A stretch of DNA of 64,000 nt. It comes from Anolis carolinensis. Taxonomy: Eukaryota. Shown one piece after another: positions 3,774 to 60,538 of this stretch (positions are counted from its first letter, which is position 1; each line of letters starts with the position of its first letter). A model generated the notes under the pieces. That model had not been told where the DNA came from. It ran no database searches and was given only the letters and a program-made list of their open reading frames with translations. The translations under genes and the position numbers were made by a program. The stretch lies in NCBI RefSeq assembly GCF_035594765.1, contig NC_085842.1, forward strand, positions 218,747,747 through 218,811,746, read 5' to 3'.

Positions 3774-4029
3774 CAGCCGTGGCGGCACAATGGGTTAAAC
3801 CCTTGTGCTGGCTGACCTGAAGGTTGGGTTGCTGACCTGAAGTTTGCTGGTTCAAATCCATGAGACGAAGTGAGTTCCTGTCTGTCAGCTCTAGCCTGCA
3901 GGGACATGAGAGAAGCCTCCCAGCTAACACATCTGGGCGTCCCCTGGGCAACGTCTCTGTAGACGACCAATTCTGTCACACCAGAAGCAACTTGCAGTAT
4001 GTTCTCAAGTGGCTTTGACACAATAAAAA
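3774..4029 (+). mobile_element. Poly(A)-tailed squamate tRNA-derived SINE (second copy at ~63281-63545)
   Basis: A-box-like TGGCGGCACAATGG, B-box GGTTCAAATCC, shared body GGGCGTCCCCTGGGCAA...CCAGAAGCAACT, A-rich end. Confidence 0.75.
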
Positions 4030-4750
4030 GTTATAATTGCATATTATATAACATGTAATATTACTAATAATATTGCAGTATAGTGGTATAGTACAATATA
4101 GTAATATAATGCTTATATTGTGCTATGTTAATAAAATATTGTATGTACATATAAGCCGCCCTGAGTCCCCTTTGGGGTGAGAAGGGCGGGATATAAATGT
4201 TGTAAATAAATGATCAATAAATTAAATCAGCAAAAACTTTCACATGGTAGGAGATAGTTGATGGTGGGATATGTCATTGTTTTCTTTTTTTGAGTTTTTA
4301 AAAATGGAGGCAGGATGTCCATCTGTTTGGAAAGCTTTGACTGTGTATTTTTTCATGGCAGAAAGACCCTTGTGGTCTCCTCCAACTCTGTGGTTCTCTC
4401 TGTTTGTTGAAATTATTTGTTGTCTATTGCTCTTAAAATTGGTTCATTTTCGGGGTTTAATTGAATGTATATCTAATAGCATGACTTTAGGCCAATCAAG
4501 CTGAATCTGAAAAAGACAGCAGAATAGTACAGCACTGCACTGTGTTCTGGTGTTGATATTTCAGGTCAAGAGTTGGAGATGGAAGTAGTAGTCCTGGTTT
4601 CCATTCAAACAGAATCTTCCTCCTATAGAAGCCAAAGGAGGCTCCAGGCTACATTTCTTGGACGTCCCAAGGAGGAGAAATGCAGGCGGCCGAGAACTAG
4701 AGCCCAGTTCCGGCGAGTCAACGCAACATTGGCGAAAAGAAGCTCTAGAG

Positions 4751-4929
4751 CAGGGATGGGCAAACCTGGGCCCTCCAGGTATTTTGAACTTCAACTCCCA
4801 GAATTCCTGACCTCAGGCCCTTTCCTTTTTCCCCTCAGCCGCTTAAGGGGAAAAGGAAAGGGCCTGAGGCCAGGAATTCTGGGAGTTGAAGTCCAAAACA
4901 CCTGGAGGGCCCAAGTTTGCCCATGCCTG
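4751..4929. mobile_element. hAT-type palindromic MITE
   Basis: CAGGGATGGGCAAAC...GTTTGCCCATGCCTG with 8-bp TSD CTCTAGAG/CTTTAGAG. Related copies at ~8993-9127, 9488-9623, 9643-9745, 10048-10132, 11500-11635, 17250-17377, 23531-23664 and 54889-55008. Confidence 0.85.
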
Positions 4930-4934
4930 CTTTA

Positions 4935-6030
4935 GAGATTAGGCGAACGAGCCTCGGGCGCGAGCATAACGACAGCGCGCGCTCCTCCCTTCCCTCGGTT
5001 GTTGCCGTGGCGCATGCGCAGGTAAGGGCTCAGGAAAGATCCAAGTCGCCTCACAGCCTGTGGCCTCCAGGTGCTTTGAAACGCCGACTCCCAGCATTCA
5101 AAGGGCTTCTGGGAGTTGGAGATGAACCTCCTCCGACCAAGCGTCCTCAAAGCTGCTGTTTGGGACTCCAACTCCCAGAATTCCTGACCATTTAACAAGC
5201 TGGCAAGGGCTTCTGGGAGTTGGAGGCCAAACCGGTTTGAGGGAAGCGCTCTTTCGACGAGACGCCAGCCGAAGTTTGCGCATGCGCAAGAGAGAGTGTG
5301 GGGGGGGAGCGCGCGCCGTCGCTTCCGTTCTTTCCGAGCGCGCGCAGGCGCAGAAGAGGAGATTGGCGCCGTTTCTCTGAGGAGGGCTTCCGCGTCGGCT
5401 GTTGCCTGGCCCTGGTGTTCGTTGGCAGAGCGGGCGGGGAAGGAAGGCAGGAAGAGCGTCCCCTTCCTCCGGCGCCTCGCTTGCCGCCCGCCTTGAGGGG
5501 CCTGGTCGCAGGCGGGAGGCTACGGCGTCGCCTCCTCCTTCTCCCCGGATGTGTGTGGCCGCCCCGGAGCCCTCCCAGGCCTCGCGGGTCCGGGGTTTGC
5601 CGCCCGGGAGGGAGCCGCTCTGATGACGGCCTCCTCCCTTGGCGACGCCTCCACCGCCGAGCACTGGCCTGAGCCGGGTTTCCCTTCCTCCTTCTCGTCT
5701 TTCTGGGCGCGATGACCACCCCGGCCTTGCTGCCTCTCTCTGGGCGCCGCATCCCGCCGCGGAGCCTGGGCCCGTCCTCCTCCTTCCCGCACCACAGGGC
5801 TACCTTGAGACTCTCCGAGAAGTTCATCCTGCTGCTGATTCTCAGTGCCTTCATCACGCTGTGTTTCGGGGCCTTCTTCTTCCTGCCGGACTCCTCCAAA
5901 CACAAGCGTTTCGACCTGGGCTTGGAAGATGTCCTCATCCCTCACGTGGAGGCCGGCGAGGGGGGCAAGCAGGCCGGAGGGTACCTGATCCACGGGCAGG
6001 GCCGCGACCAACACAGGCACAGGTAGGTAG
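4935..6030. promoter_or_regulatory. CpG island and TATA-less promoter of MAN1A2 with NRF1 and ETS motifs
   Basis: Abrupt GC- and CpG-rich stretch in an AT-rich background. NRF1 motifs GCGCATGCGCA at 5010-5020 and TGCGCATGCGCA at 5277-5288; CTTCCG (ETS/GABP) near 5322 and 5387. Confidence 0.85.
5712..6022 (+). CDS. MAN1A2: MAN1A2 exon 1 (cytosolic tail, type II transmembrane anchor)
   Basis: ATG at 5712; MTTPALLPLSGRR...HRH; donor AG|GTAGGT at 6023, phase 2. Confidence 0.96.
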
Positions 6031-8074: not shown

Positions 8075-10429
8075 ATATTTATTTATATCCCGCTTTATCT
8101 CCCCAAAGGGAACTCAAAGTGGCTTGACAAAAGCATTAGTATACAATTGAAGGTGGGATGTAATTTAGGCTTCTGAACACCAAGTACAGGCAGTCCCCTG
8201 AGTTACAAACATTTGATTTACAAGCTACTCCTAGTTAAGAACCAGACAGCAGATGCTATTCCCTCCCTCCCCCTGAAACGTGGCCTTGACTGATTGGGAA
8301 CGAAAGTGACAAAACACTTCAGGTGTGGTTGGGTCATTGTGTGCTCTTGTGAGACATATTGTCCTAAAGACCACTTGGTATGGGTAGAAGCCTTACTCTG
8401 CACCTGACTCTATGCAGTGTGGATAGCACCAAAGATATTTGAAGAAAAGAAAATGAAAAGTTGAATAATAGCATTGGAAGAGACCCAGCGTCTGCCAAAA
8501 AACCCCCAGAGAAGGAGACTCTGTGTACTCCAAGGCAGCATATTACACCTTTGAATAGCTCTTACAGTTCTTCCTAATGTTTAGGTGGAATCTTCTTTCT
8601 TTCCATTTGAATCCATTGTTCTGAGTCCTAGTCTCCAGAGCAGCAGAAAACAAGCTTGCTATAAAATGTTTAAGTTTTCCTTATATGCTCAGATCCAACT
8701 ATTGAGTTACATGTGTAACCAATAAGGAAAGTCTGCTTTTAGAAAAGTTTATTTTCCTTTTTCATTGTGAATGAAGCACGGAAAGTAATGTCAGCTTCAA
8801 GTAGACACTAAATCCTCTTAATGAAAAGATTGGGAGAGTTTTCATAGACAGGTAGACTTAACCTTGTTAATTAAAACATACTAGAAATATGACAGTATTT
8901 TCCTATTGAATGCTGTTTGTTCTCTCTTCTCCCCCCAACCCTTTTTGGGACAAGCTATATAATGTGCTGCAGCTGATTAAAGTATATCCCATGCAGGGCT
9001 CAAAACTGTGGGTCCCCAGGTGTTTTGGCCTACAACTTCCAGAAATCCAAGCCAATTTACCAGCTGTTAGAATTTCTGCAAGTTGAAAGCCAAATCACCT
9101 GGGGTCCCACAGGTTGAGAAATATTGCTCTTGAAGGACATGATATGCACATCACATTTCAGTGGGCTGGTTAAGAAAAATACCTCACATTTTTTAGCGGC
9201 TGTTCCTGGGCTTGGTTCTGATCTGTAGTCAACCGATACTGTGGCCACCGGTTTTTGGAGTGTTTTTGTAGGCACTGCACAGTGAAACCAGTTTGTTTTA
9301 ATTTACTTCCAAAAGTCTATTTAGAACTGCCCTCTGTTTTGGTGCTACTTATCTTACCTGTTGTACGTTTGTGCACATGACAACAGAAGGATCGACTAAG
9401 GTAGAGTTTCATAGCTGAAGCTTGATTTCTATGTTTACTGCAGAAACACTGTCCATACCCACTATCCTCCCAAGTGCTAATGCTAGAACATAATTTCTCA
9501 AACTGTGTTCCTCCAGATGCTTTGGACTTCAGCTTTCATAACTCCTAACAGCTGGTAAGATGGCTGGGATTTCTTGGAGCTGAAGTTCAAAACATGTGGA
9601 GGAGCATGGTTTGAGAAACACTGTGCTAGAGAATGTCTAGATCAGGCCTGCAGAAACTGTACCAACTCCCAGGATCCCTAGCCAGCTTGTCCAGTGGTCA
9701 GGAATTCTGGGAGCACCTGAAGGGCCACAGGCTGTGCAGACCTGGTCTAGATAGAAAGAGGACAAAGAAGAAAAATGAACTTCACTATCAGAAGCTTTGT
9801 TAATTGGGGTATACCTGTTCCTAATTTAGAAGACAACAAAAGCAGTACATGTTAACCACAAAACATACAGGCCACATGTAGAACTACATACACTTATTGT
9901 CCTTTGGTTTCTCCAACAACAGTTCTCCTCCCCTCATAATGCAGGGGGCAGTAATCTTCAGGGATTCTCCCCCTTCTTGCTATGCCCACTCCAGAAGATT
10001 AGGGGATTGGGTGTGAGAGTGCAAAGGGAGGGGGAAATTGCTAAAAGCAGGCATGGGCAAACTTTCAGCTGTTAGGAATTGTAGGAGTTGGAAGTCCAAA
10101 ACACCTGGAGGGCCGAAGGTTGCCCATGCCCGATTAAAAGTAACCAATACAGTCCAGGTTTTATAATATGGGAAAAAATTCTCTATAGAAGGAAGATTTG
10201 GAAAATGGTAACTGCTATCCATTCAGTCTACCAAATGATCTCTATTTTGGTTTTTCCTCTGTGTGTTATATAGCTGGATTTAAGTGAGCAAGGAAAACAG
10301 CATTAAGTTGGTTGAGGTTTTAGTAGGTTTTAACTTAGTAATGTTCATTTTGGTTCCCCCCCCCCCCCCCCCACATTTCTTCATGTACTTTGACTGAAGA
10401 CTGACTGGATACATAAACGATTAACAACA

Positions 10430-12600: not shown

Positions 12601-14049
12601 TTAGTTAGTTGTTATTACTTGTTTATTGCAAAGGAGTTGATTTGCCATTTTGAGTTCAAAGTAATGACAATTCTAAAAATGTTGACTATAATTTGTATTG
12701 AAAAGACTGAAGGACATTCAGCACATCAGGTGATGACACTTTCATTTTCAAACCATATGTTTTCTGACTTTTTAATAGGGCTGAGTAGTTTTAAAGCTAC
12801 TCAAGGGATCAGCATGAACTTAAATCCTTCATGCTAAATCTCTGATGAGTTTTCAATCCCCTTTAAATCAGATTTATAAGGGGAATCTTAAATTGTAGTC
12901 CTAAACATGCTTTTTTAGGAGAAAGCCCTGTTGAATATAGTGGGGCTTATATCTTATCAAACATGTATAGATGGTGAGGTTTGTTCTTTAAATTCTCAAT
13001 GTCAGTTTTCCAATGACAGCTGTCTCTCTTGTTTTGTGATTGCTGTTGCTTTGTTATTTGGGCCCATACAAATTGTGTAACCACATATTACTGTAGCTAT
13101 GTGAAATCTGTGGGTTGCGATTAGTCTTAATTGAATTACCGAGTTAATTTTTGTTGAACTCTAAATTGAATAACAGACTGTGAAACTGCACCTTTAAAGC
13201 TCTGGATCTATTAAAAATGTTGCTTGCTTCCTTCTCTTACTGTTGTAGTGCACCATCCACATTTGAGAGTGCATTTTCTGTGGAATGAATTCAGTTCGAA
13301 ACCACTTGAACTGCCATGGCTTAATGCTTTGGAATTCTGAGGTTTGTAGTTTTACAAGATCTTTAGTTTTCTGTGGTGCTTCAAGCTACATGTCCCAGGA
13401 TTGTATAGCGTTGGGCAATGGCAGTTATAGTGGTGTCGAACTGCAATAAATTTCCTTGAGCCATGAGGAGAGGCGGGCAAGAAATAAAATTTTGTTGTTG
13501 TTGTTGTTATTAATCTATAGTTCAGATGCACCCAGTGTTTCTCTGAATGTTTCAGCATCTTCCACTTTGTCCTCACCAATCCCTTTCCAATGACCTTTGT
13601 ACATGTTATGCCCCTAGAATTGGCAGGAACAAATAATTCAGAACAGCAAGTTCAAGATCATCCTGGGAATCTCTCAATTTTGCTTACTTTCTTGACCTCT
13701 GTTACTAATAATAGAGTCCCTTTAGCTAGTAACAGAGACAGTTGAGCTTATAATGGGTCTCCCTGGTACACAAAATTCTTCGTAGTTCCTTCTAAATGAT
13801 TATTTTCCCATATTGAAAGGAGTATTCAGATCTTATATTTAACATGCCTGATCTTAGCTATCAAGGTACCTGGACATAGCAGCGTTGCTTATTGCTTCTG
13901 GGCTTTTTCAAAGTGCAGGTTGAAATTGGAGATCGCTTGGCCTACTTTTACTTTGAACTGGGTCCAAAGTTTGCTAGAATTCAAAACAGCTTTGTTGCTT
14001 GTAAGTATACTTTATGAACATTTATTACAGATGTAGTCTGTAATAGACT

Positions 14050-16276
14050 CTTGATCTAATCTTAACAAATGTGGAAGACCTGATCAATACAGTTAAAGTG
14101 GTTGGATCCTTAGGGGCAAGTGACCATGTGCTCCTGCAGTTTGCAATACAAAGGAATGCTGAAACTAAGACAAGTCAAACACGCATTCTGGACTTTAAGA
14201 GAGCTGACTTCCAAAAAATGAAGGAATTACTGAGTGGCATTCTATGGACACCAATATTAAAAAACAAGGGAGTTAAGGATGGATGGGAGTTTTTCAAAAG
14301 TAAAATACTCAAGGCGCAAATGCAAACAGTGCCAACAAAGAAGAAAAATAAGACAAGTGCAAAGAAGCCAGAATGGATGTCCAAAGAACTTCTAACTGAG
14401 CTAAAACTCAAAAGTGACATGCACAAGAAGTGGAAAAGGGGAGAAATCACCAAAGAAGAATTCAAACGTATAGGGAAAAGGTTCGCAAGGCTAAAGCGCA
14501 AAATGAGCTCAGGCTTGCCAGGGACATAAAAAACAACAAAAAAGGCTTTTTTGCTTACGTTGGTAGAAAAAGGAAGAACAAGGAGGTGATAGGGCCACTG
14601 CAAGGAGAAGATGGGGTGATGGCGACAGGGGATAGGGAAAAGGCAGAACTGCTTAATGCCTTCTTTGCCTCGATCTTCTCACAAAAAGAAAGCCATCTTC
14701 AACCTCAGCAACATGGAATGGACGAAGGATTGGGGGGAAATCCAACCCCAAATAGGGAAACAAGTTGTCCAGGAACACCTGGCCGCTCTAAATGAATTCA
14801 AGTCCCCAGGGCCAGATCAGCTACATCCAAGAGTATTGAAGGAACTAGCGGAAGTTATTTCAGAACCACTGGCAATTATCTTCGAGAGTTCTTGGAGAAC
14901 GGGAGAAGTCCCAGCAGATTGGAGGAGGGCGAATGTGGTCCCTATCTTCAAGAACGGAAAAAAGAACGACCCAAACAATTACCGTCCGGTCAGCCTCACA
15001 TCGATACCAGGCAAGATTCTGGAAAAGATCATTAAAGAAGTAGTCTGCGAACACTTAGAAACAAATGCGGTCATTGCTAATAGTCAACACGGATTTACCA
15101 AAAAAAAGTCATGCCAGACTAATCTGATCTCTGTTTTCGATAGAGTTACGAGTTGGGTCGATACAGGGAATGCCGTGATGTAGCGTACCTGGATTTCAGT
15201 AAGGCCTTCGACAAAGTCCCCCACGACCTTCTGGCAAACAAACTAGTAAAATGTGGGCTAGACAAAACTACGGTTAGGTGGGTCTGTAATTGGCTAAGCG
15301 AACAAACCCAAAGGGTGCTCACCAATGCGTCGTCTTCATCATGGAAAGAAGTGACAAGTGGAGTGCCGCAGGGCTCCGTCCTGGGCCCAGTTCTGTTCAA
15401 CATCTTTATTAACGACTTAGACGAAGGGTTAGAAGGCACGATCATCAAGTTTGCAGACGACACCAAACTGGGAGGGATAGCTAACACTCCAGAAGACAGG
15501 AGCAGAATTCAAAATGATCTTGACAGACAAGAGAGATGGGCCGAAACTAACAAAATGAAGTTCAACAGGGACAAATGCAAGATACTTCACTTCAGCAGAA
15601 AAAATGGAAATCAAAGATACAGAATGGGGGACGCCTGGCTTGACAGCAGTGTGTGCAAAAAAGACCTTGGAGTCCTCGTGGACAACAAGTTAAACATGAG
15701 CCAACAATGTGATGCGGCAGCTAAAAAAGCCAGTGGAACCCCTTCTTTGGAGGCTTTTAAGCAGAGGCTGGATGGCCATCTGTCGGGGGTGCTTTGAATG
15801 TGATTTCCTGCTTCTTAGCGGGGGATTGGACTGGATGGCCCATGAGGACTGCCGAACAGCCCTCACAGTCAGGAAGTTCTTCCTGATGTTCAGGTGGAAT
15901 CTCCTTTCCTGTAGTTTGAAGCAATTGTTCCGCGTCCTAGTCTGCAGGGCAGCAGAAAACAAGCTTGATCCCTCCTCCCTATGACTTCCCCTCACATATT
16001 TGTACATGGCTATCATGTCTCCTCTTAGCCTCTCTTCTGCAGGCTAAACATGCCCAGTTCTTTAAGCCTCTCCTCATAGGGCTTGTTCTCCAGACCTTTG
16101 ATCATTTTAGTTGCCCTCCTCTGGACACATTCCAGCTTGTCAACATCTCCCTTCAACTGCGGTGCCCAGAATTGGACACAGTATTCCAGGTGTGGTCTGA
16201 CCAAGGTAGAATAGATGGGTAGCATGACTTCCCTGGATTTAGACGCTATAGCCCTATTGATGCAGGCCAAAATCCC
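14050..16276 (+). mobile_element. Young 5'-truncated CR1 LINE (end of endonuclease plus RT), frameshifted and rearranged at its 3' end
   Basis: LGASDH, KSPGPD, NYRPVSLTS, YLDFSKAFDKV, GVPQGSVLGP, KFADDTKL; the segment 15848-16276 is inverted. Confidence 0.95.
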
Positions 16277-21555: not shown

Positions 21556-21690
<135 letters not shown>

Positions 21691-23033
21691 TAATATCTTT
21701 GCATCATTGGTAAAATGGACAGATATTGAAAAAAATAATTATCCACAGTTAAGCAACATTTTAATATGACGGGGCTAAACTGATTGTCTTTTTTGTACAT
21801 TCTGTGCATTCCTACATGTGAGGGAAACGATCTGCATAGTTGTGGGATCTTGCAGAAAGTATTGGCAAATACGGAAATATAATATCTTAAAAATAACTTT
21901 CATGCTATTATGAATATATTAAAATGACAAGAGAATAAATATATATGGATATTACATTTGATACAAAGTCACCAAAAAATAAGTATTCTGGATAATGCAT
22001 TGCTCTTTGGATGAGCTGAAATCTGTTTGGACTATTTTCAGTGCCTTCAATTTTTTATCTTTATGTAAACAAGGTAAAGGAAATATATTCTCCCTACAGT
22101 TCTAGGATAATATAACTGGAAGACCTGGCTTTTCTCCTAGCTGTATACAAGTGGGAACTATTGGCATCTTGCTGGCCTGGAAAAAGAGCCTTGTAGTGCT
22201 TTCAGGGTTCATAGTACAGTGGTAATAAAAAGGACAGCTATCAGACTCAGCAGTTTATACCTTATTGCTTCACATTATATGTGGGTGGAGCTATGATAGT
22301 GGTTGGAATTTCCTCCAAATGGTTTCCTCCTTTTTACCTAACAAAATGTATCTACATTTGAGCTTCAGCTCTGAAATTCTGTATTGATTTAAAAAGACTG
22401 ACTTCCTCATACCTCACTCCTTAAACATTGCAAAAGAGAATCTCAATATTCCATAGGTTTTGGAGTCATGCAGGTCATTTTTTAATATATTGTGTGTTCT
22501 ATTTTTTTTTCTTTTAATCTGTAAACAAATGTGTTCCTGTTGGGACCTGGACTCAAAGAAATTAATCAATTAAATAAGCTTCAGGATTTTCTCCCCACAT
22601 ATATTTAGAAATAATCATTGGAAGGAGGGGAGCCCTTGTTTGACCTGCCTTGATATAGGTAGACGATAATTCGTAAAATGTGCATCATTACAAGAAAAAT
22701 ATAGAATTCACTGGTGACAGGATTCCTTTGTTGAAAATAAGTAATATATCTATCTATCTATCTATCTCTAGCTCTCTATAATATATAACTCATCAGTTAG
22801 GATTAGGGAACCCAATGGCAGTCACTGAGGACAAAGTGTTTCCCAAAATCTGGGCTTAATTTCCCCATATAAGTGTAAATATTAAACATTCACATACATA
22901 TAAGAGAAAATCAACTTATGAATCAATATGGCATAGCAGTGTAACTGTTGGGTGAGGACTCTGTGGTATCAGCCATGGGAGGAACTTGAGCAAGACACAC
23001 AGACTCAGAAGGCAATAAGAAACCTTCTGAATA

Positions 23034-23356
23034 CAGTAGAGTCTCACTTATCCAACACTCGCTTATCTAACATTCTGGATTATCCAACGCATTTTTGTAG
23101 TCAATGTTTTCAATATATCGTGATATTTTGGTGCTAAATTCGTAAATATAGTAATTACTACATAGCATTACTGCGTATTGAACTACTTTTCCTGTCAAAT
23201 TTGTTGTATAACATGATGTTTTGGTGATTAATTTGTAAAATCATAACCTAATTTGATGTTTAATAGGCTTTTCCTTAATCTCTCCTTATTATCCAACATA
23301 TTCGCTTTTCCAACGTTCTGCCGGCCCGTTTATGTTGGATAAGTGAGACTCTACTG
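23034..23356. mobile_element. MITE family A copy (323 bp)
   Basis: Same TIRs and TA duplication; near-identical to 881..1203. Confidence 0.9.
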
Positions 23357-23945
23357 TATATGTGGCAAACAAACCCCCCATGAAACCAGGTGCTTTAGAT
23401 GTACCATGAGTCCAGAAATGACTTGAAGGCACATGGCAAAAGCAAACTAATCCCTTGAGCAGGCTATCCTAAACCCTATCCTCTCTTCATGATAACCACA
23501 GATTTAGAATCAGACCTGCACTTGTTTATTCAGTGGTGTCAAACTTGTAGCCCTCCAGATGTTTTGGATTTCAGCTCCCAGAATTCCTGGCCTTAGAACA
23601 AGCTGGCTATGACTTTTGGAGTTTGAGTCCCAAACATTTGGAGGGCCACAAGTTTGACACCTCTGTTTTATGTACACTGACATCCAGCTGTATTGCTCAT
23701 GGCTTCTGTTTCTTAATTATGTTAAAATGACTGGAAATGGTATATACAGATGGTTGAATGATGAACTGTGCATTCTAATGGCGAAATTCCACATTAATGT
23801 TGACAGCACAACATTTTCCTCACCAAATCATAGAATCATAGAATGAATGAAGTTTAATGGACTTATATTTAATCACCCTTGGTTATTGATTGCTGAGCAC
23901 AGATTGTTTCTATGTGAGGCAGTTTTTCTTCAGAGTTAGTAGTTT

Positions 23946-25676
23946 TCACATTTCATCATTATAATAGATTTTGTGCTGACTTGCTAGTTCTTCATGGCTG
24001 GGAATGTTGTTAAAGACTTCCTCATTGCAAGTGTTCAGGTCAGATAACTCCTCTGTGAATATGTTGCTACTATGCTTTTCCTTTTGGAATGTGATGTTGA
24101 GAATTTCTTTTCTCCATTCTTGTTGACAGAGTTGTTCCTTAGACTCTTTTAGTTCCAAAGAAGGGTGGGACATATCTTCTTCAGCCCGCATACCTACCCA
24201 AAAAATCACAACTTCTTTGCGAGCAGCAGCAACAGTCAGAATAGTGATGAGTATACAGGGCACTAAGTATAGGAGAGTTGGCTGATTTGCCTGTAAGAAT
24301 GTTGTTGCAATGAAATTCACCAAAAGACCGTAGCTATAAGCCAGAGTAGATGCTAGAAAATAAACCCCTGAAGAGCCAACTTGAACGTCAAATCTGTGAC
24401 AGTAGGCTACTAGGAAGCCAGGAAGTACAACATCTCCAAGGCCTGCAACAGCAAAGGAATTGTCCAGAGTTGAAGCTGAAGATAATATTGGTGCTTTTAA
24501 CAGAAAGGGGATCTTTTCTGAGTGATATGAACCCAAACCTGTCACATCTGTGACACTTCTTCCAGTTTTGGTTAGGAAAGGTGTGATGAAGAGACAGACG
24601 GTATCATAAAACAAATGAGCTATAAGAAACATGCTGCAGTTCTTTAGGTTTGGAATATGAATTGTTCTCAGAAGATAGATGCCAATACACATTCCTAAAA
24701 CATTGTGCAAAATCCAGCCCCATACATCTTCATTTCCGATGAAAATACAGACTGCAGTGATAGATATGCACAGTAGCACCAGGAGTAATGCTCTGATCTC
24801 TAGTGCCTTGTGGAAATATGGAAGATGGATCACAGATCTTCCAGATGAGAATTTGCTCACAAATGGAGCCAAACAACAGTATAGGCTGAAAGATGCATAT
24901 AGACAGTAAATGCCAGTCATTGCAAACACCATATAATCATATAAGCAGTAGAGAGAAAGCAGCATGAAAGTGGCCATTACTGCACATGTACATGTAAAGT
25001 AGACATTGGTATCAATTGTTATCTCACCAGAACTTTCTGTTCGGCACTGACTTTTGATATGTTGCTTTTTTCTCTCTGAACATCCAGCCCAGTAGCTTCC
25101 TACAATAACAGTGACCATTGACATCAAGTAGATTATCCCAGTTTTGTATAGCAAGTCAGTGATCAGGTTCCTGAATAACAAGTAGAGAACATCTACTTCA
25201 CTAAGTAGAATCCCTGGAATAGTAATCTCTTCACAGTGACCCCAGTTGAATGCAGATCGCCACCTTTTCATTGGATATGGAGCATCTCCGCCAAGAGTCA
25301 GGAGCCCCTGGGTTCTGTTTATCTGATGGAGTCTGGCATTCTCAAAGAGATTGCAGTTTCCCTCTCTTATAGATGCAATTCTGGTACTGAATCCGCCTCC
25401 ATCATTGTCATCTTTCCCAAAGAATGAAGGTAGGCAACACAAGGCTGAATAAGTGAGGTTCTGACTGAAAAGCTGAAAATCAAACCAGTGATTTTTATTA
25501 CCTTCCTGATGTGATTTAATCTGCTGTGAATGGAAGACAAAGCAGTAATCGCCTCCTTTTTCTGGATCAATATGAATGACACCAGGGTTCTGAGCAAGCA
25601 CAGGTGGAACAAAGAGCAGAAATAGCCAGGCTAGCAACAGCACTGCTTTCCTTGATATTCTACAATTGTCCTTCAT
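23946..25676 (-). CDS. Intronless signal peptide peptidase-like 2 family GxGD aspartyl intramembrane protease (SPPL2B/2C-like), nested antisense in MAN1A2 intron 3
   Basis: Uninterrupted 576-aa ORF. It has a signal peptide (KAVLLLAWLFLLFVPPVLA), a PA-domain remnant (GGDYC, REGNC), GSYWAG, multiple TM segments, YD at 24603-24608, GLGD at 24432-24443, AYCHRFDVQV and QPTLLYLVP. The family is clear; which paralog it is remains uncertain. Confidence 0.9.
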   Translation of the reverse strand: MKDNCRISRKAVLLLAWLFLLFVPPVLAQNPGVIHIDPEKGGDYCFVFHSQQIKSHQEGNKNHWFDFQLFSQNLTYSALCCLPSFFGKDDNDGGGFSTRIASIREGNCNLFENARLHQINRTQGLLTLGGDAPYPMKRWRSAFNWGHCEEITIPGILLSEVDVLYLLFRNLITDLLYKTGIIYLMSMVTVIVGSYWAGCSERKKQHIKSQCRTESSGEITIDTNVYFTCTCAVMATFMLLSLYCLYDYMVFAMTGIYCLYASFSLYCCLAPFVSKFSSGRSVIHLPYFHKALEIRALLLVLLCISITAVCIFIGNEDVWGWILHNVLGMCIGIYLLRTIHIPNLKNCSMFLIAHLFYDTVCLFITPFLTKTGRSVTDVTGLGSYHSEKIPFLLKAPILSSASTLDNSFAVAGLGDVVLPGFLVAYCHRFDVQVGSSGVYFLASTLAYSYGLLVNFIATTFLQANQPTLLYLVPCILITILTVAAARKEVVIFWVGMRAEEDMSHPSLELKESKEQLCQQEWRKEILNITFQKEKHSSNIFTEELSDLNTCNEEVFNNIPSHEELASQHKIYYNDEM

Positions 25677-28600
25677 CTTTCCTAGGGACTGTAATCATGT
25701 CCTTCTTCTGTCCCCTTCTGGTATTCTGACCCTTTTCCTTGTTTGGGTTCTGGGACCCAAGATTTGGTCTGAAACTGCTTGCTACATGATGAGCTTTTCC
25801 TGATACCCTTTCTCCCCATCATGGTTATAACCCACAGCTTTGTTTGTTATGTAATAAACCCAGCTTTTTACCATGGAGACAAGCCTTCACTTTTGTCTGA
25901 TGTACTGAAGGCTTCACCTCTCCCATTTTGGACTTGCTTTTACAGAGCAAGTTGCTTCTAGTTCTTAGCAAGATCATATGGCATCTGATGCCTTTACACC
26001 CTTAACCTAGGGTTCATTTACACTGTGGATTTAATAGTTTGACACTAATTTATTTATTAAGAAATTTCTATATCTCCTTTCTCTGAGGACTCAAGGCGGT
26101 TTACAACAACAGCTAAACATGCAATGTACAATTTAAGTCGTTAAAATAATCCCATTCGTATCCGTTGAATATGAAATTGTCATTAAAAAGACTAAAACGA
26201 TATATAAAATTCCCAGGAAGATAAAAAAATATGACTATAAAGTGCAGTTCCTAGGCTTCTGTCATCATTAATTAAAAGCTATTCTACAAAGGAAAGTTTT
26301 CAGATTTTTTTTTCTCAAGGACAAGAGGGTGGGGGGTGCTCTGATTGTTTCTGGCAGAGCATTTCAGAGTTTTGGAGCTGCACCCAAGAAGGTGCCATAT
26401 GTAGACAGTTTTCATTGTCAACTGTCCCTGAGCTAAGTGGAGAGGAGTGTTTCGCAAATCAATCTTAGGAGTCTAACTGGCTTGCGTGGAAGGATATGCT
26501 GTCTCAAGTATCCTGGACCGAAGTGTGTAGGGCTTTATAGGTTAAAACCAGCACCTTAAATTGGGCCCGGAAACTAATCGGGAGCCAGTGGAGCTGCCTC
26601 AGCAGGGGGGTGGCTTTAACTTCCATGGGTCTATGCTTTGGGATGATGGTATTTGTAGTTTGATGGAACACCTGCAGTCTCTGGCAGAGAAGGACAAAGA
26701 ACTTGCAAAACTACAATTTCCATGATTGGCTTTTTTCTAGAAGAAAGGAAAGAGTCTTCCCAATCTCTATTTTTGCTTAGTGCTAGTTTGGTCATGGGAC
26801 ATTAACAGTCCCGAACAGATGAAATTTATAGTGATATAGTTATTTATTTATTTACTTACTTACTTGCAGCATTTACTCACCCCGAAGGGGACTCAGGGCG
26901 GATCACAGTGTACATATATTTGGCAAACATTCAATGCCATTAGACAAACAACACACAGACAGACAGACACACAGAGGCTATTTTACTTCCCAGCTTCTGG
27001 TTTTCTGAGGGTTTGTTCGATTCTGGCCACAGGAGGAGCTGCTGCTTCATCATCCACTGTGACAACAAGTCCTTTTTGATGGAGTACTTCCTCATCTAGT
27101 GTTGTAAATCAGTTAAATTAGCCTCCCCACATAAACGGTCCCTAAATTTTCCTACTTGACAGATGCAACTGTTTCGGGTTGCTTAGGTCTACAACGAGCA
27201 GGACTATTTTTTATTTTAATTGTCGGGTGCTCATTCCGACAGGCTGGCCTAAACTCATGACCTCTTGGTAATAGTGATTTATTGCAGCTGGCTACTAACC
27301 AGCCTGCGCCACAGGCTGGTTAGTTCAGTTCATTTGTCACGAATGTGATTAAGCAGTAACAAAATATTTAGAAGTCTTACATTCCTGAAATGTTCAGACT
27401 CAAACTGGAATAGATTTATTGCATTGCTGACATCAGAGCTACTGGTCTTTACAACTTTGCTCTATCTGGGAGAGAGTGAAATAATAGAAAGAAAAATATT
27501 TTTAAATGAAGCCAGTAGATTGTAAAAGGGGAATTTTGTGAAGTTCATGGGAGAGAAAATCTGCAGATCTTAGCAGAACTAAAATGAACTGAAAATGAAA
27601 ATGGATTGTAATAGCAAGATGCTATTTATAGGAGGGCAACATTAAAGGCTTAAGTGGAAGCATAAGTAACTCTGCTTCTTGCCTATTTTGAGATCATCTA
27701 AGATACACTCTTGTACACAGACTTAATGGTATATATGAGCCACATTCTCAAAATGACGAAGGAATGCAGAAGTTCTTTAGGGGGCCTTAGAGCAAGAAAG
27801 CTGTTCTTGAATCTTCCCTAAAGGTTTCTATTACTCTTGCCCATGAAGTTGTCAAATGTGTATGTATAGGATTTTCAAAGCTAAGTATATGCCAAAATGA
27901 TCCAAAAAACTTTATAGTGTAGTATGAGCTTAAGAATTGACTTAAGAGAAAATGTTCCTTTATTTCGTAATTCACCCCCACCCCAACTATCAAATACCCA
28001 TGATGTTATCCCTATGTATGTATTAGGCTAATCTTAGCATCTTAGATTAATAAGATAGCTTTCACAATTGTTCACTCTAAAAATCCCCAACTTCTGATAT
28101 ATGTGTATGTGCCTTAAAGTCACCTCTTGCTGGACAAAGATATGTGAATTTCCCAGTGAATGTATCTGTTAAATGTAAATGGACAACATCTGAGTCATGA
28201 CATGTTTAAGGTTTCAGCTTTAGATGGGAAATTTCAAATGGAAATTTCAGATGGAAAGGAGAAAGTTGACTTATTTAATACATTCATAATAAAGACTTTG
28301 TGAGACATGGGAGTGGAGACTTTTCTGGATGCTTCAAGAAGGACAGGACAAATAATATACCTCATATAAGAGCATAAGAAGAGCTGTGTGCTGTATTCAG
28401 TCAGAGAACTTAAAAAGAGACATTGCCAAAATACAGTCAGCTTCAACTTTCAGTGGTTTAGCTCCTGCAGATTTAATTATTAGTGGATTATTTGCTGCCA
28501 CCTCTGCTGCTGCCCTATGCCCTTTTAAATAGGGACTTTAATAAACAAGTGTCCACTGAGCTTTGTTCTGTTAAGTCCAGTTTGATCAGTAGTCAAAAGT

Positions 28601-29313: not shown

Positions 29314-29460
<147 letters not shown>

Positions 29461-46929: not shown

Positions 46930-48694
46930 AGTTAAAATTTTAGTTAAGTGCTTCTTGCATTCACTCATGGTTTTAAATCACTGCTACAAAAAATCTGGTT
47001 TTTAGATCCTAAGCCATTTTAGGGCAATTTTTAAAAGATTTTTACTAATTAAATATAATACCAATTCTCTCTTGTTTATTGTGATGGGGTTTTGTTGTCC
47101 ACCATACACTTCACTAACTTCACTAATAGTAGTAGTTTTATAAGAGTTTCAGTAAGGGTGTGAGGTTTACCGGCAAGAACCAGGTCATGACTAACCAAGT
47201 TCAATGCTCTCAGTGCTTTCTTGTTATTTGTCTTTGCATGAGATTCAAATTTTGTCTGAACTGCATGGAGTTCATTGCTTTTTCTTTTGAAATAGTCTGC
47301 AGTTTTATTTGTAAAGTCAGGATAAGTTTTGAAATGTAGTCGAAACTTATCAGGGAACATAGAAGTATTGGGCAAAATTTTGTTTCATATCACACACTGG
47401 ATATCCATCAGCAAACAGTGAATCATAGAATCATAGAATAGTAGAGTTGGAAGAGACCTCATGGGCCATCTAGTCCAACCCCTGCCAAGAAGCAGGAAAT
47501 CGCATTCAAAGCACCCCCGACAGATGGCCATCCAGCCTCTGTTTAAAAGCCTCCAAAGAAGGAGCCTCCACCACAGTCTGGGGGAGAGAGTTCCACTGCC
47601 GAACAGCCCTCACAGTGAGGAAGTTCTTCCTGATGTTCAGGTGGAATCTCCTTTCCTGTAGTTTGAAGCCATTGTTCCGTGTCCTAGTCTGCAGGGCAGC
47701 AGAAAACAAGCTTGCTCCCTCCTCCCTATGGCTTCCCCTCACATATTTGTACATGGCTATCATGTCTCCTCTCAGCCTTCTCTTCTGCAGGCTAAACATG
47801 CCCAGTTCTTTAAGCCTCTCCTCATAGGGCTTGTTCTCCAGACCTTTGATCATTTTAGTTGCCCTCCTCTGGACGCTCTCCAGCTTGTCAACATCTCCCT
47901 TCAACTGTGGTGCCCAAAATTGGACACAGTATTCCAGGTGTGGTCTGACCAAGGCAGAATAGAGGGGGAGCATGACTTCCCTGGATCTAGACGCTATTCC
48001 CCTATTGATGCAGGCCAAAATCCCGTTGGCTTTCTTAGCAGCCGCATCACATTGCTGGCTCATGTTTAACTTGTTGTCCACAAGGACTCCAAGATCTTTT
48101 TCACATGTACTGCTGTCTAGCCAGGTGTCCCCCATTCTGTATCTTTGATTTCCATTTTTTCTGCCGAAGTGAAGTATCTTGCATTTGTCCCTGTTGAACT
48201 TCATTTTGTTAGTTTCGGCCCATCTCTCTAGTCTGTCAAGATCGTTTTGAATTCTGCTCCTTTCTTCTGGAGTGTTGGCTATCCCTCCCAGTTTGGTGTC
48301 ATGTCCAAATATGAATAGCAGTACTTCTGTTTTTTACTTCCTTTTAGTACCTTTTCACTAGGCATTGTAGACTGAAGCAGGAATATGTGCAGTATTTTCC
48401 GAGTTCAAGCGCAAGGAATTTGCATTATCTTCTTCGAGAGTAAGCTCACAACTGTTGTTATCTCCCTTTGAGCAGTGGTTGATGGCAGATGACTCAGATC
48501 TTAGGGAGCCCATCTTAAGCCATAGTCCTATTTCAATGAAAGTTTAGCGCTAACAATTGGGGGAGGGGGAGGAGGGAAGTAGCATGGCACTGCCACCGTT
48601 CGCACTTATGCCAGTCCGGGAGCAGGAAGAGGAGCCCCTCACAATCACTCATGGAGTCCCAAGGACTCCGCGGAGCACCCTTTGGCAAGCCCTG
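46930..48694 (-). mobile_element. Decayed hAT (Charlie/Buster) transposon with transposase remnant, interrupted by a CR1
   Basis: ORF 47076..47375 reads DYFKRK...KALRALNLVS...AGKPHTLTETLIK, typical of Buster/Charlie transposases. The N-terminal KY..SYLD/FTV segment is split by the CR1. Terminus CAGGGCTTGCCAAA (minus strand) at 48694 sits next to GTCTAGAC. Confidence 0.7.
47420..48302 (-). mobile_element. Young 5'-truncated CR1 LINE with intact ORF2 C-terminus and (ATTCTATG)n tail
   Basis: 232-aa ORF MKFNRDKCKILH...KQRLDGHLSGVL; tail reads GAATCATAGAATCATAG on + at 47420; near-identical to the 14-16 kb copy. Confidence 0.95.
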
Positions 48695-60399: not shown

Positions 60400-60538
60400 N
60401 NNNNNNNNNNNNNNNNNNNNNNNNNNNNNNNNNNNNNNNNNNNNNNNNNNNNNNNNNNNNNNNNNNNNNNNNNNNNNNNNNNNNNNNNNNNNNNNNNNNN
60501 NNNNNNNNNNNNNNNNNNNNNNNNNNNNNNNNNNNNNN
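60400..60538. other. Assembly gap (N run)
   Basis: Run of N. Confidence 1.

Follow-up and report, generated by a model that had tools for sequence, protein, structure and literature searches.

The locus described here lies in a 64,000-nucleotide stretch of the Anolis carolinensis genome (assembly GCF_035594765.1, contig NC_085842.1, positions 218,747,747 to 218,811,746 of the forward strand), which we call the window. It holds the GH47 gene MAN1A2 on the plus strand and, antisense within one of its introns, an intronless gene encoding a protease of the SPPL2 type. We use the working name SPPL2X for this intronless, MAN1A2-nested, SPPL2B-like gene; it represents a second intronless SPPL2 lineage—unrecognised, mislabelled as SPPL2B, expressed, and under purifying selection—and is possibly the sauropsid SPPL2C. 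New here are its nesting in MAN1A2 across sauropsids, its shift between introns of that host, and the loss of the PAL motif throughout the sampled squamates with the catalytic aspartates kept.

SPPL2c has been regarded as a testis-restricted mammalian oddity of the SPP/SPPL family, an intronless gene long suspected of being a pseudogene (PMC7366577). Our literature search found no joint mention of SPPL2C and MAN1A2 in the papers covered, and the best matches for SPPL2C combined with reptile terms contained no mention of SPPL2C at all.

The Gene and Its Product

The open reading frame (ORF) of SPPL2X, and with it the coding sequence, occupies positions 23946-25676 on the minus strand, starting with an ATG and running in a single exon through 576 codons to a stop. 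The predicted protein matches the Pfam family Peptidase_A22B (PF04258) over residues 227-495, scoring 200.5 bits where the curated cut-off is 23.3 (E 5.6e-59); its closest solved structure by sequence is human SPPL2A (9k92, E 1e-66), in an alignment that covers residues 15-504. Four regions, all on the minus strand, can be delimited: a signal-peptide-like N-terminus (residues 1-28, 25593-25676), read from the sequence, which ends at a VLA-QN boundary and aligns with the signal-peptide region of SPPL2A and SPPL2B; a luminal ectodomain (25161-25592); a nine-transmembrane (TM) protease core (24186-25160), defined by Pfam, the structural model, and the match to SPPL2A; and a cytosolic C-terminal tail (23949-24185).

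Both catalytic motifs lie in the core. The YD motif (Y357-D358, 24603-24608) carries the first catalytic aspartate, whose codon in its FYD context is at 24605-24603 and which is unchanged across 44 aligned sequences; the GLGD motif (G412-D415, 24432-24443) carries the second, with its codon at 24434-24432. The third family signature is altered—QPALLY reads QPTLLY in the anole protein, with QPTL at 24273-24284, where RNA contigs agree with the genome. An AlphaFold2 (AF2) model built on a 44-row alignment is confident in the TM core only (predicted local distance difference test, pLDDT, 70-93). This core matches SPPL2A (9k93) with E 1.3e-17, a TM-score of 0.91 by target, and a root-mean-square deviation of 2.4 A, followed by presenilins and PSH; the modelled ectodomain (residues 22-159) has a pLDDT of 25-34, at which the PA fold cannot be judged from the model.

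The ectodomain is best described as PA-derived and remodelled. Profile comparison with hhalign relates the ectodomains of the SPPL2X clade to those of SPPL2B at a probability of 99.7% (E 1.4e-26), whereas a search of the isolated ectodomains with Pfam PA gave no match in any clade member, even at E<=10. Alignment places two cysteine-rich inserts (CCLPS..DGGG and NWGHCEE) and a new NGT sequon in the ectodomain throughout the clade, as well as a deletion of 13 residues before TM1. The protein would consist of a signal peptide, a glycosylated luminal domain of remodelled PA type, a presenilin-type core of nine TM segments, and a cytosolic tail that is unconstrained; by analogy with other SPPL2 enzymes, the substrates of Asp358 in TM6 and Asp415 in TM7 would be type II or tail-anchored membrane proteins, cut inside the bilayer.

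These results uphold much of what an initial annotation, made from the letters alone, had proposed for the locus. The single-exon, stop-free ORF with its YD and GLGD motifs is confirmed by the ORF, the Pfam match, and the motif positions, and its antisense placement in MAN1A2 intron 3 by the two exons that flank it (exon 3 at 21556-21654, exon 4 at 29332-29454). The proposed signal peptide and PA-like ectodomain stand in part: the signal-peptide-like stretch is there, and PA homology emerges from profile comparison but not from Pfam.

Transcript and Promoter

Public runs of the same organism, identified by codes that reveal neither tissue nor library, were mapped to window positions 22300-28200. 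Contigs from three small runs, belonging to three studies, span the gene and nothing else (23831-25730, 23869-25737, and 23848-25737; depth 561-2350), while RNA depth over the flanking intron is zero except at two interspersed repeats; transcription, which the initial annotation had asked to have checked, is present in all three studies. The contigs match the window without a single difference and contain no joints within the ORF. In one run, position 23848 is preceded on the plus strand by 23 T that have no match in the window, the poly(A) tail of an RNA from the minus strand. The poly(A) signal ATTAAA occurs twice, at 23873-23868 and 23858-23853 (together 23853-23873, minus strand), and its second copy, in the context CATTAAAC(C/T)TCATT, is kept in transcript-like contigs of other squamates. 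From the unjoined contigs, the poly(A) tail, and the ATTAAA signals it follows that the mRNA is unspliced, polyadenylated, and ~1.9 kb long (23848-25737, minus strand), with a 5' untranslated region (UTR) of ~61 nt and a 3'UTR of ~98 nt or slightly more.

Upstream of the transcript start, at 25775-25885 on the minus strand, a seven-species alignment and motif positions reveal promoter blocks of the form ..GTCTCCATGGT..TTATTA(C/T)(A/G)TAACAAACAA.. and ..CATCATGTAGCAAGCAG. Squamates and turtle have this ~110 bp region in common, as ..GTCTCCATGGT..TTATTATGTAACAAACAA..CCATGG.. and ..CATCATGTAGCAAGCAG; SPPL2X would accordingly be a gene transcribed from its own conserved promoter.

Several smaller observations concern the transcript. 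The promoter is not GC-rich (GC ~0.41). A short upstream ORF of 12 codons (25660-25698, minus strand) overlaps the main start codon; its ATG, at 25698-25696, is out of frame and is missing at the corresponding place in Rhineura. The two repeats, at ~22900-23500 and 27000-27400, reach a summed contig depth of 1e4 to 2e6 in RNA-like runs, and the former has inverted ends (GAGTCTCACTTATCCAACA...). One contig from run SRR6291270 (1950-2348) joins a squamate transcript, ~65 nt past the stop, to a GC-rich HEM4 (UROS)-like fragment on the opposite strand; it is most likely a chimera of transcriptome assembly. A literature search by the run accessions of the squamate transcript contigs, aimed at their tissue, gave no match.

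Distribution and Selection

Using anole SPPL2X and its turtle ortholog as queries, protein searches recovered the gene from squamates, turtles, and paleognath birds; the analysis excluded any contig judged to be human. Identity to the anole protein is 89% in Anolis sagrei, 56-70% in other squamates (Rhineura, Vipera, Pogona, Podarcis, Paroedura, and several transcript contigs), ~50% in the turtles Mauremys and Pelusios, and 43-46% in the paleognaths Dromaius, Rhea, Apteryx, and Nothoprocta. These searches returned no member from crocodilians, neognaths, mammals (including monotremes), or amphibians. The turtle and paleognath orthologs group with the squamate ones in one clade with 100% support, and the source databases label every protein of the clade 'SPPL2B'.

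That label is wrong. Anolis sagrei, Pogona, and Paroedura each carry a normal SPPL2B, complete with a Pfam PA domain, beside SPPL2X; in Paroedura the SPPL2B gene extends over 28.8 kb with introns and adjoins an LSM gene on another chromosome than SPPL2X. Orthology to SPPL2B is not supported: SPPL2X falls outside the SPPL2B clade, is single-exon, and coexists with a separate SPPL2B. The expected distinction from the true multi-exon SPPL2B is therefore borne out within single species.

The SPPL2X frame is intact in 17 sauropsid proteins, a set that spans more than 250 million years of divergence. In a codon alignment of ten orthologs (493 ungapped codons), pairwise ratios of nonsynonymous to synonymous substitution (dN/dS), computed by the Nei-Gojobori method (NG86), range from 0.16 to 0.36, with bootstrap 95% intervals all <0.51. 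The unsaturated pairs give 0.19 (dS 0.37), 0.23 (dS 0.51), and 0.36 (dS 0.16), and maximum likelihood under the Goldman-Yang (GY) model gives an omega of 0.357. By region, the ectodomain is under constraint despite escaping Pfam PA (0.12-0.37), as is the TM core (0.18-0.34), where squamate values are as low as those of turtles and birds; the tail is weakly constrained (0.5-1.1 in most pairs). The initial annotation had proposed an SPPL2B-like intronless gene kept by selection, and the intervals, which exclude 1, agree with it.

The Host Gene and the Shift between Introns

The exons of MAN1A2 were located one at a time by search. Exon 1 begins at 5712, and the others lie at ~18.5, 21.6, 29.3, 30.0, 31.4, 31.9, 33.6, 37.0, 38.9, 39.7, and 41.6 kb; exon 3 stands beyond the 3' end of SPPL2X and exon 4 beyond its 5' end. 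The arrangement recurs in all seven genomes compared (four squamates, one turtle, and two ratites, the window included): SPPL2X is single-exon and antisense within a GH47 gene of 643-646 aa that has the MAN1A2 exons. SPPL2X therefore predates the split between squamates and the turtle/bird lineage, dating back to crown sauropsids or earlier.

The exact address within the host differs. When the anole MAN1A2 exon peptides were mapped onto the loci of the other six genomes, SPPL2X proved to lie between exons 3 and 4 (intron 3) in the four squamates, the window among them, whereas in the two ratites exons 4 and 5 both lie beyond its 3' end (intron 5). In the turtle, exon 5 lies beyond the SPPL2X 3' end (intron 5), exon 4 being outside the fetched locus. 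The gene has thus crossed exons 4-5 with its orientation kept. We consider it likely that the passage of SPPL2X between introns 5 and 3 took place at the DNA level and carried the promoter along, because the upstream blocks are common to squamates and turtle and a second retroposition would have left the promoter behind. Such a shift could be a local duplication followed by loss. SPPL2X offers a clean case of an antisense nested gene that has stayed in the same host for hundreds of millions of years, yet has shifted introns.

The Active Site

The PAL motif is where the squamate proteins depart most visibly from the family. It reads QSTL in all other squamates sampled and QPTL in this anole; turtles and birds keep VYDVFFVFITPF and QPALLY. 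In squamates, the otherwise conserved YDVFFVFITPF has also become YDTVCLFITPF. Both catalytic aspartates are nonetheless kept in 16 of the 17 SPPL2X members, every squamate among them. The exception is the tinamou Nothoprocta, in which ELGN replaces GLGD and the catalytic aspartate is lost. Further substitutions occur beside the aspartates—geckos have TD in place of YD and SLGD or SLRD in place of GLGD, and Pogona and a relative read FD and CD in place of YD.

The accepted signatures of the family include (Y/F)D and G(L/I/F)GD, and although PAL mutations impair SPP and presenilin, formal proof that SPPL enzymes need PAL is still wanting (PMC7366577). Squamate proteins that lack PAL and keep both aspartates make this requirement testable with natural sequences. 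On the single-origin scenario weighed below, squamates would provide a natural experiment, selection having retained a presenilin-type protease that lacks PAL.

Relation to SPPL2C

SPPL2C is present in placentals and marsupials, and its nearest relatives outside its own group are SPPL2B proteins, at 47-53% identity. A tree of 35 proteins under the site-heterogeneous LG+C20 model places SPPL2X as sister to SPPL2C (ultrafast bootstrap 95; Shimodaira-Hasegawa-like approximate likelihood ratio test 94), and the pair as sister to tetrapod SPPL2B. The TM-core tree also joins the two, with a support of 95 and no long-branch warning. The approximately unbiased (AU) test rejects a union of SPPL2C with mammalian SPPL2B (p=0.0076).

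Discrete characters were compared as well. SPPL2X and SPPL2C have in common a 1-residue insertion and an identical 3-residue deletion, the latter in a loop that keeps one and the same length in all SPPL2B from coelacanth to mammals. Sites invariant in SPPL2B have changed in both at 21 positions, with the same new residue at 10 of them. The initial annotation had seen a mosaic of SPPL2B-like and SPPL2C-like residues, of which PGFLVAY is indeed common to SPPL2C; YCHRFD occurs in all SPPL2 paralogs and is not specific to SPPL2B. Eight lineage-specific SPPL2B signature sites are mixed and do not decide the placement.

Two observations concern the regions upstream of the genes. Opossum and elephant SPPL2C share a block TTTATGA..GGCCCTGGTTTC..GCTCTGTGACA(G/A)GGAG (at 9830-9900 of the fetched locus in the former and in the last 170 bases before the ATG in the latter), and one 12-nt word of it also precedes turtle SPPL2X, a match that is not statistically significant. 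A homology between the SPPL2X and SPPL2C promoters was considered and rejected, the word GGCTTATTAT found in opossum not being conserved in elephant.

Weighing the Explanations

SPPL2X is very probably a functional protein-coding gene, an intronless SPPL2B-like paralog in MAN1A2. It could be suspected of being a young or decaying processed pseudogene, its frame open by chance and its reads drawn from host pre-mRNA, but this has nothing in its favour except the lack of introns and the position inside one; a frame open in 17 species, dN/dS well below 1, RNA depth confined exactly to the gene, a minus-strand poly(A) tail, and a conserved promoter and poly(A) signal leave the idea with virtually no credence. 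We think equally little of a retrogene born within Squamata as a lizard and snake analogue of SPPL2C, which is what the initial annotation had suggested. The squamate proteins are the most divergent (stem 0.5) and their intron-3 position is their own, yet turtle and ratites carry the same gene antisense in the same host, the single clade takes in two turtles and four paleognaths, these share the ectodomain inserts and the deletion, and the promoter blocks extend to turtle. A more substantial alternative is that squamate SPPL2X has been kept without proteolytic function, as a pseudo-protease that might serve as a substrate trap or scaffold; mammalian SPPL2c, too, has non-catalytic roles, and the reading is compatible with the gene history proposed here. 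The replacement of PAL by STL or PTL, the altered sequence after YD, the missing YD tyrosine in Pogona, its relative, and the geckos, and the gecko SLGD/SLRD all fit it, and on their account protease activity is not assured. A pseudoenzyme should, however, lose its aspartates; their persistence across the whole squamate radiation favours an active protease, the TM core remains constrained, and some of the substitutions fall within accepted family variants. We therefore regard the pseudo-protease as unlikely, and judge from sequence that the squamate proteins are probably still proteases despite their altered active-site surroundings.

The history of the gene is less settled. The likeliest beginning of SPPL2X is a retrocopy made before squamates parted from the turtle/bird lineage, and the gene would have stayed antisense in MAN1A2 since; like a processed retrogene, it lacks the introns of its multi-exon parent. 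We lean slightly toward one origin for SPPL2X and therian SPPL2C, which would make SPPL2X the sauropsid SPPL2C. The fuller scenario that goes with it seems to us evenly poised: SPPL2C would be no mammalian invention, and a single intronless SPPL2B copy, made in stem amniotes more than 300 million years ago, would survive as therian SPPL2C and as the MAN1A2-nested gene of squamates, turtles, and paleognaths after at least two changes of address, one across MAN1A2 exons 4-5 in sauropsids and one, between sauropsids and therians, that took it to or from a different chromosome. Alternatively, SPPL2X arose from an SPPL2B retrocopy in stem sauropsids and SPPL2C from a separate one in stem therians, with the tree grouping and the common residues near the active site reflecting long-branch attraction and parallel change in two fast, similarly specialised copies; such independent origins, which carry the idea of the initial annotation back from squamates to the sauropsid stem, are quite possible, if short of probable. 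Against them stand the sister placement in the whole-protein and TM-core trees, the AU rejection of SPPL2C within mammalian SPPL2B, the identical loop deletion, and the 10 common derived residues, and no lineage-specific SPPL2B state links SPPL2C to therian SPPL2B or SPPL2X to sauropsid SPPL2B.

A number of results nevertheless count against the history or the function that we prefer. The AU test does not reject a union of SPPL2X with sauropsid SPPL2B (p=0.068). Long stems lead to both SPPL2X and SPPL2C, and the whole-protein trees carry a long-branch warning; when fish SPPL2B is added, SPPL2X and SPPL2C together fall outside all gnathostome SPPL2B, from shark to mammal, a biologically unlikely position that suggests attraction to the root. 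Trees of the ectodomain keep the two apart but are incoherent (SPPL2C with SPPL2A or frogs, SPPL2X with monotremes) and were treated as uninformative, and by hhalign the SPPL2X ectodomain is closer to SPPL2B than to SPPL2C. The loci differ, as the initial annotation had held: SPPL2C of opossum and elephant lies within no GH47 gene, a search of the opossum locus found no MAN1A2 exons, and SPPL2X, nested in MAN1A2 in sauropsids, does not share the genomic neighbourhood of SPPL2C. Among the protein-search matches there was no monotreme member of the SPPL2C or SPPL2X clade, which fits a therian birth of SPPL2C. Promoter similarity between SPPL2X and SPPL2C is not significant (longest common words 11-12 nt; p ~0.05 in two of 14 comparisons). 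As for the retrocopy origin, the argument is the intronless structure set against a multi-exon parent and nothing else: no genomic A-rich tract follows the 3'UTR, and neither a poly(A) tract nor a target-site duplication is visible, although such absences say little, erosion being expected at this age. On the functional side, PAL is changed, and in some squamates so are the tyrosine of YD and the initial G of GxGD. In the RNA contigs, which are coded and unlabelled, the poly(A) tail is the one indicator of the coding strand. If SPPL2X is the counterpart of SPPL2C, the gene would date from stem amniotes, and its function could be studied in non-mammalian models.

Other Features of the Window

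A GC-rich stretch at 4500-6030 (GC 0.54 in 4001-6000) surrounds MAN1A2 exon 1 and looks like the CpG-island promoter of the host. Two long stop-free stretches with reverse-transcriptase-like translations, at 14047-15794 (plus strand, MAN1A2 intron 1) and 47509-48333 (minus strand, downstream of MAN1A2), are probably remnants of long interspersed nuclear elements. A run of N occupies 60400-60538.

Comparison with Known Systems

The closest parallel to SPPL2X is SPPL2C, a therian, testis-restricted protein resident in the endoplasmic reticulum, whose human gene lies near MAPT and CRHR1. Like SPPL2X, it is intronless, SPPL2B-like, and fast-evolving, and the two share the states PGFLVAY, PTLKNC, and FLLALL in addition to the loop deletion. 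Unlike SPPL2X, SPPL2C keeps QPALLY, GFGD, and a scoring Pfam PA domain; it also has a longer acidic loop after TM1, and its identity to anole SPPL2X is 31%.

SPPL2B, multi-exon and broadly expressed, is the family whose name SPPL2X bears in databases and also its likely parent. Among named families it scores best (35-39% identity for anole SPPL2X and ~50% for the turtle ortholog), with the same domain order and a homologous ectodomain. In contrast to SPPL2X—single-exon, nested in MAN1A2, and in a fully supported clade of its own—SPPL2B evolves very slowly, with end branches of 0.01-0.1. SPPL2A (9k92/9k93) is the best solved match to SPPL2X both by sequence and by the fold of the TM core; it is the outgroup in all trees and has 30-33% identity to SPPL2X. 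Finally, the PAL motif of presenilin and SPP has its equivalent in SPPL2X at the same position, where TM9 begins, within Q-x-x-L-L-Y-L-V-P; there, turtles and birds retain PAL, whereas squamates have STL and this anole PTL.

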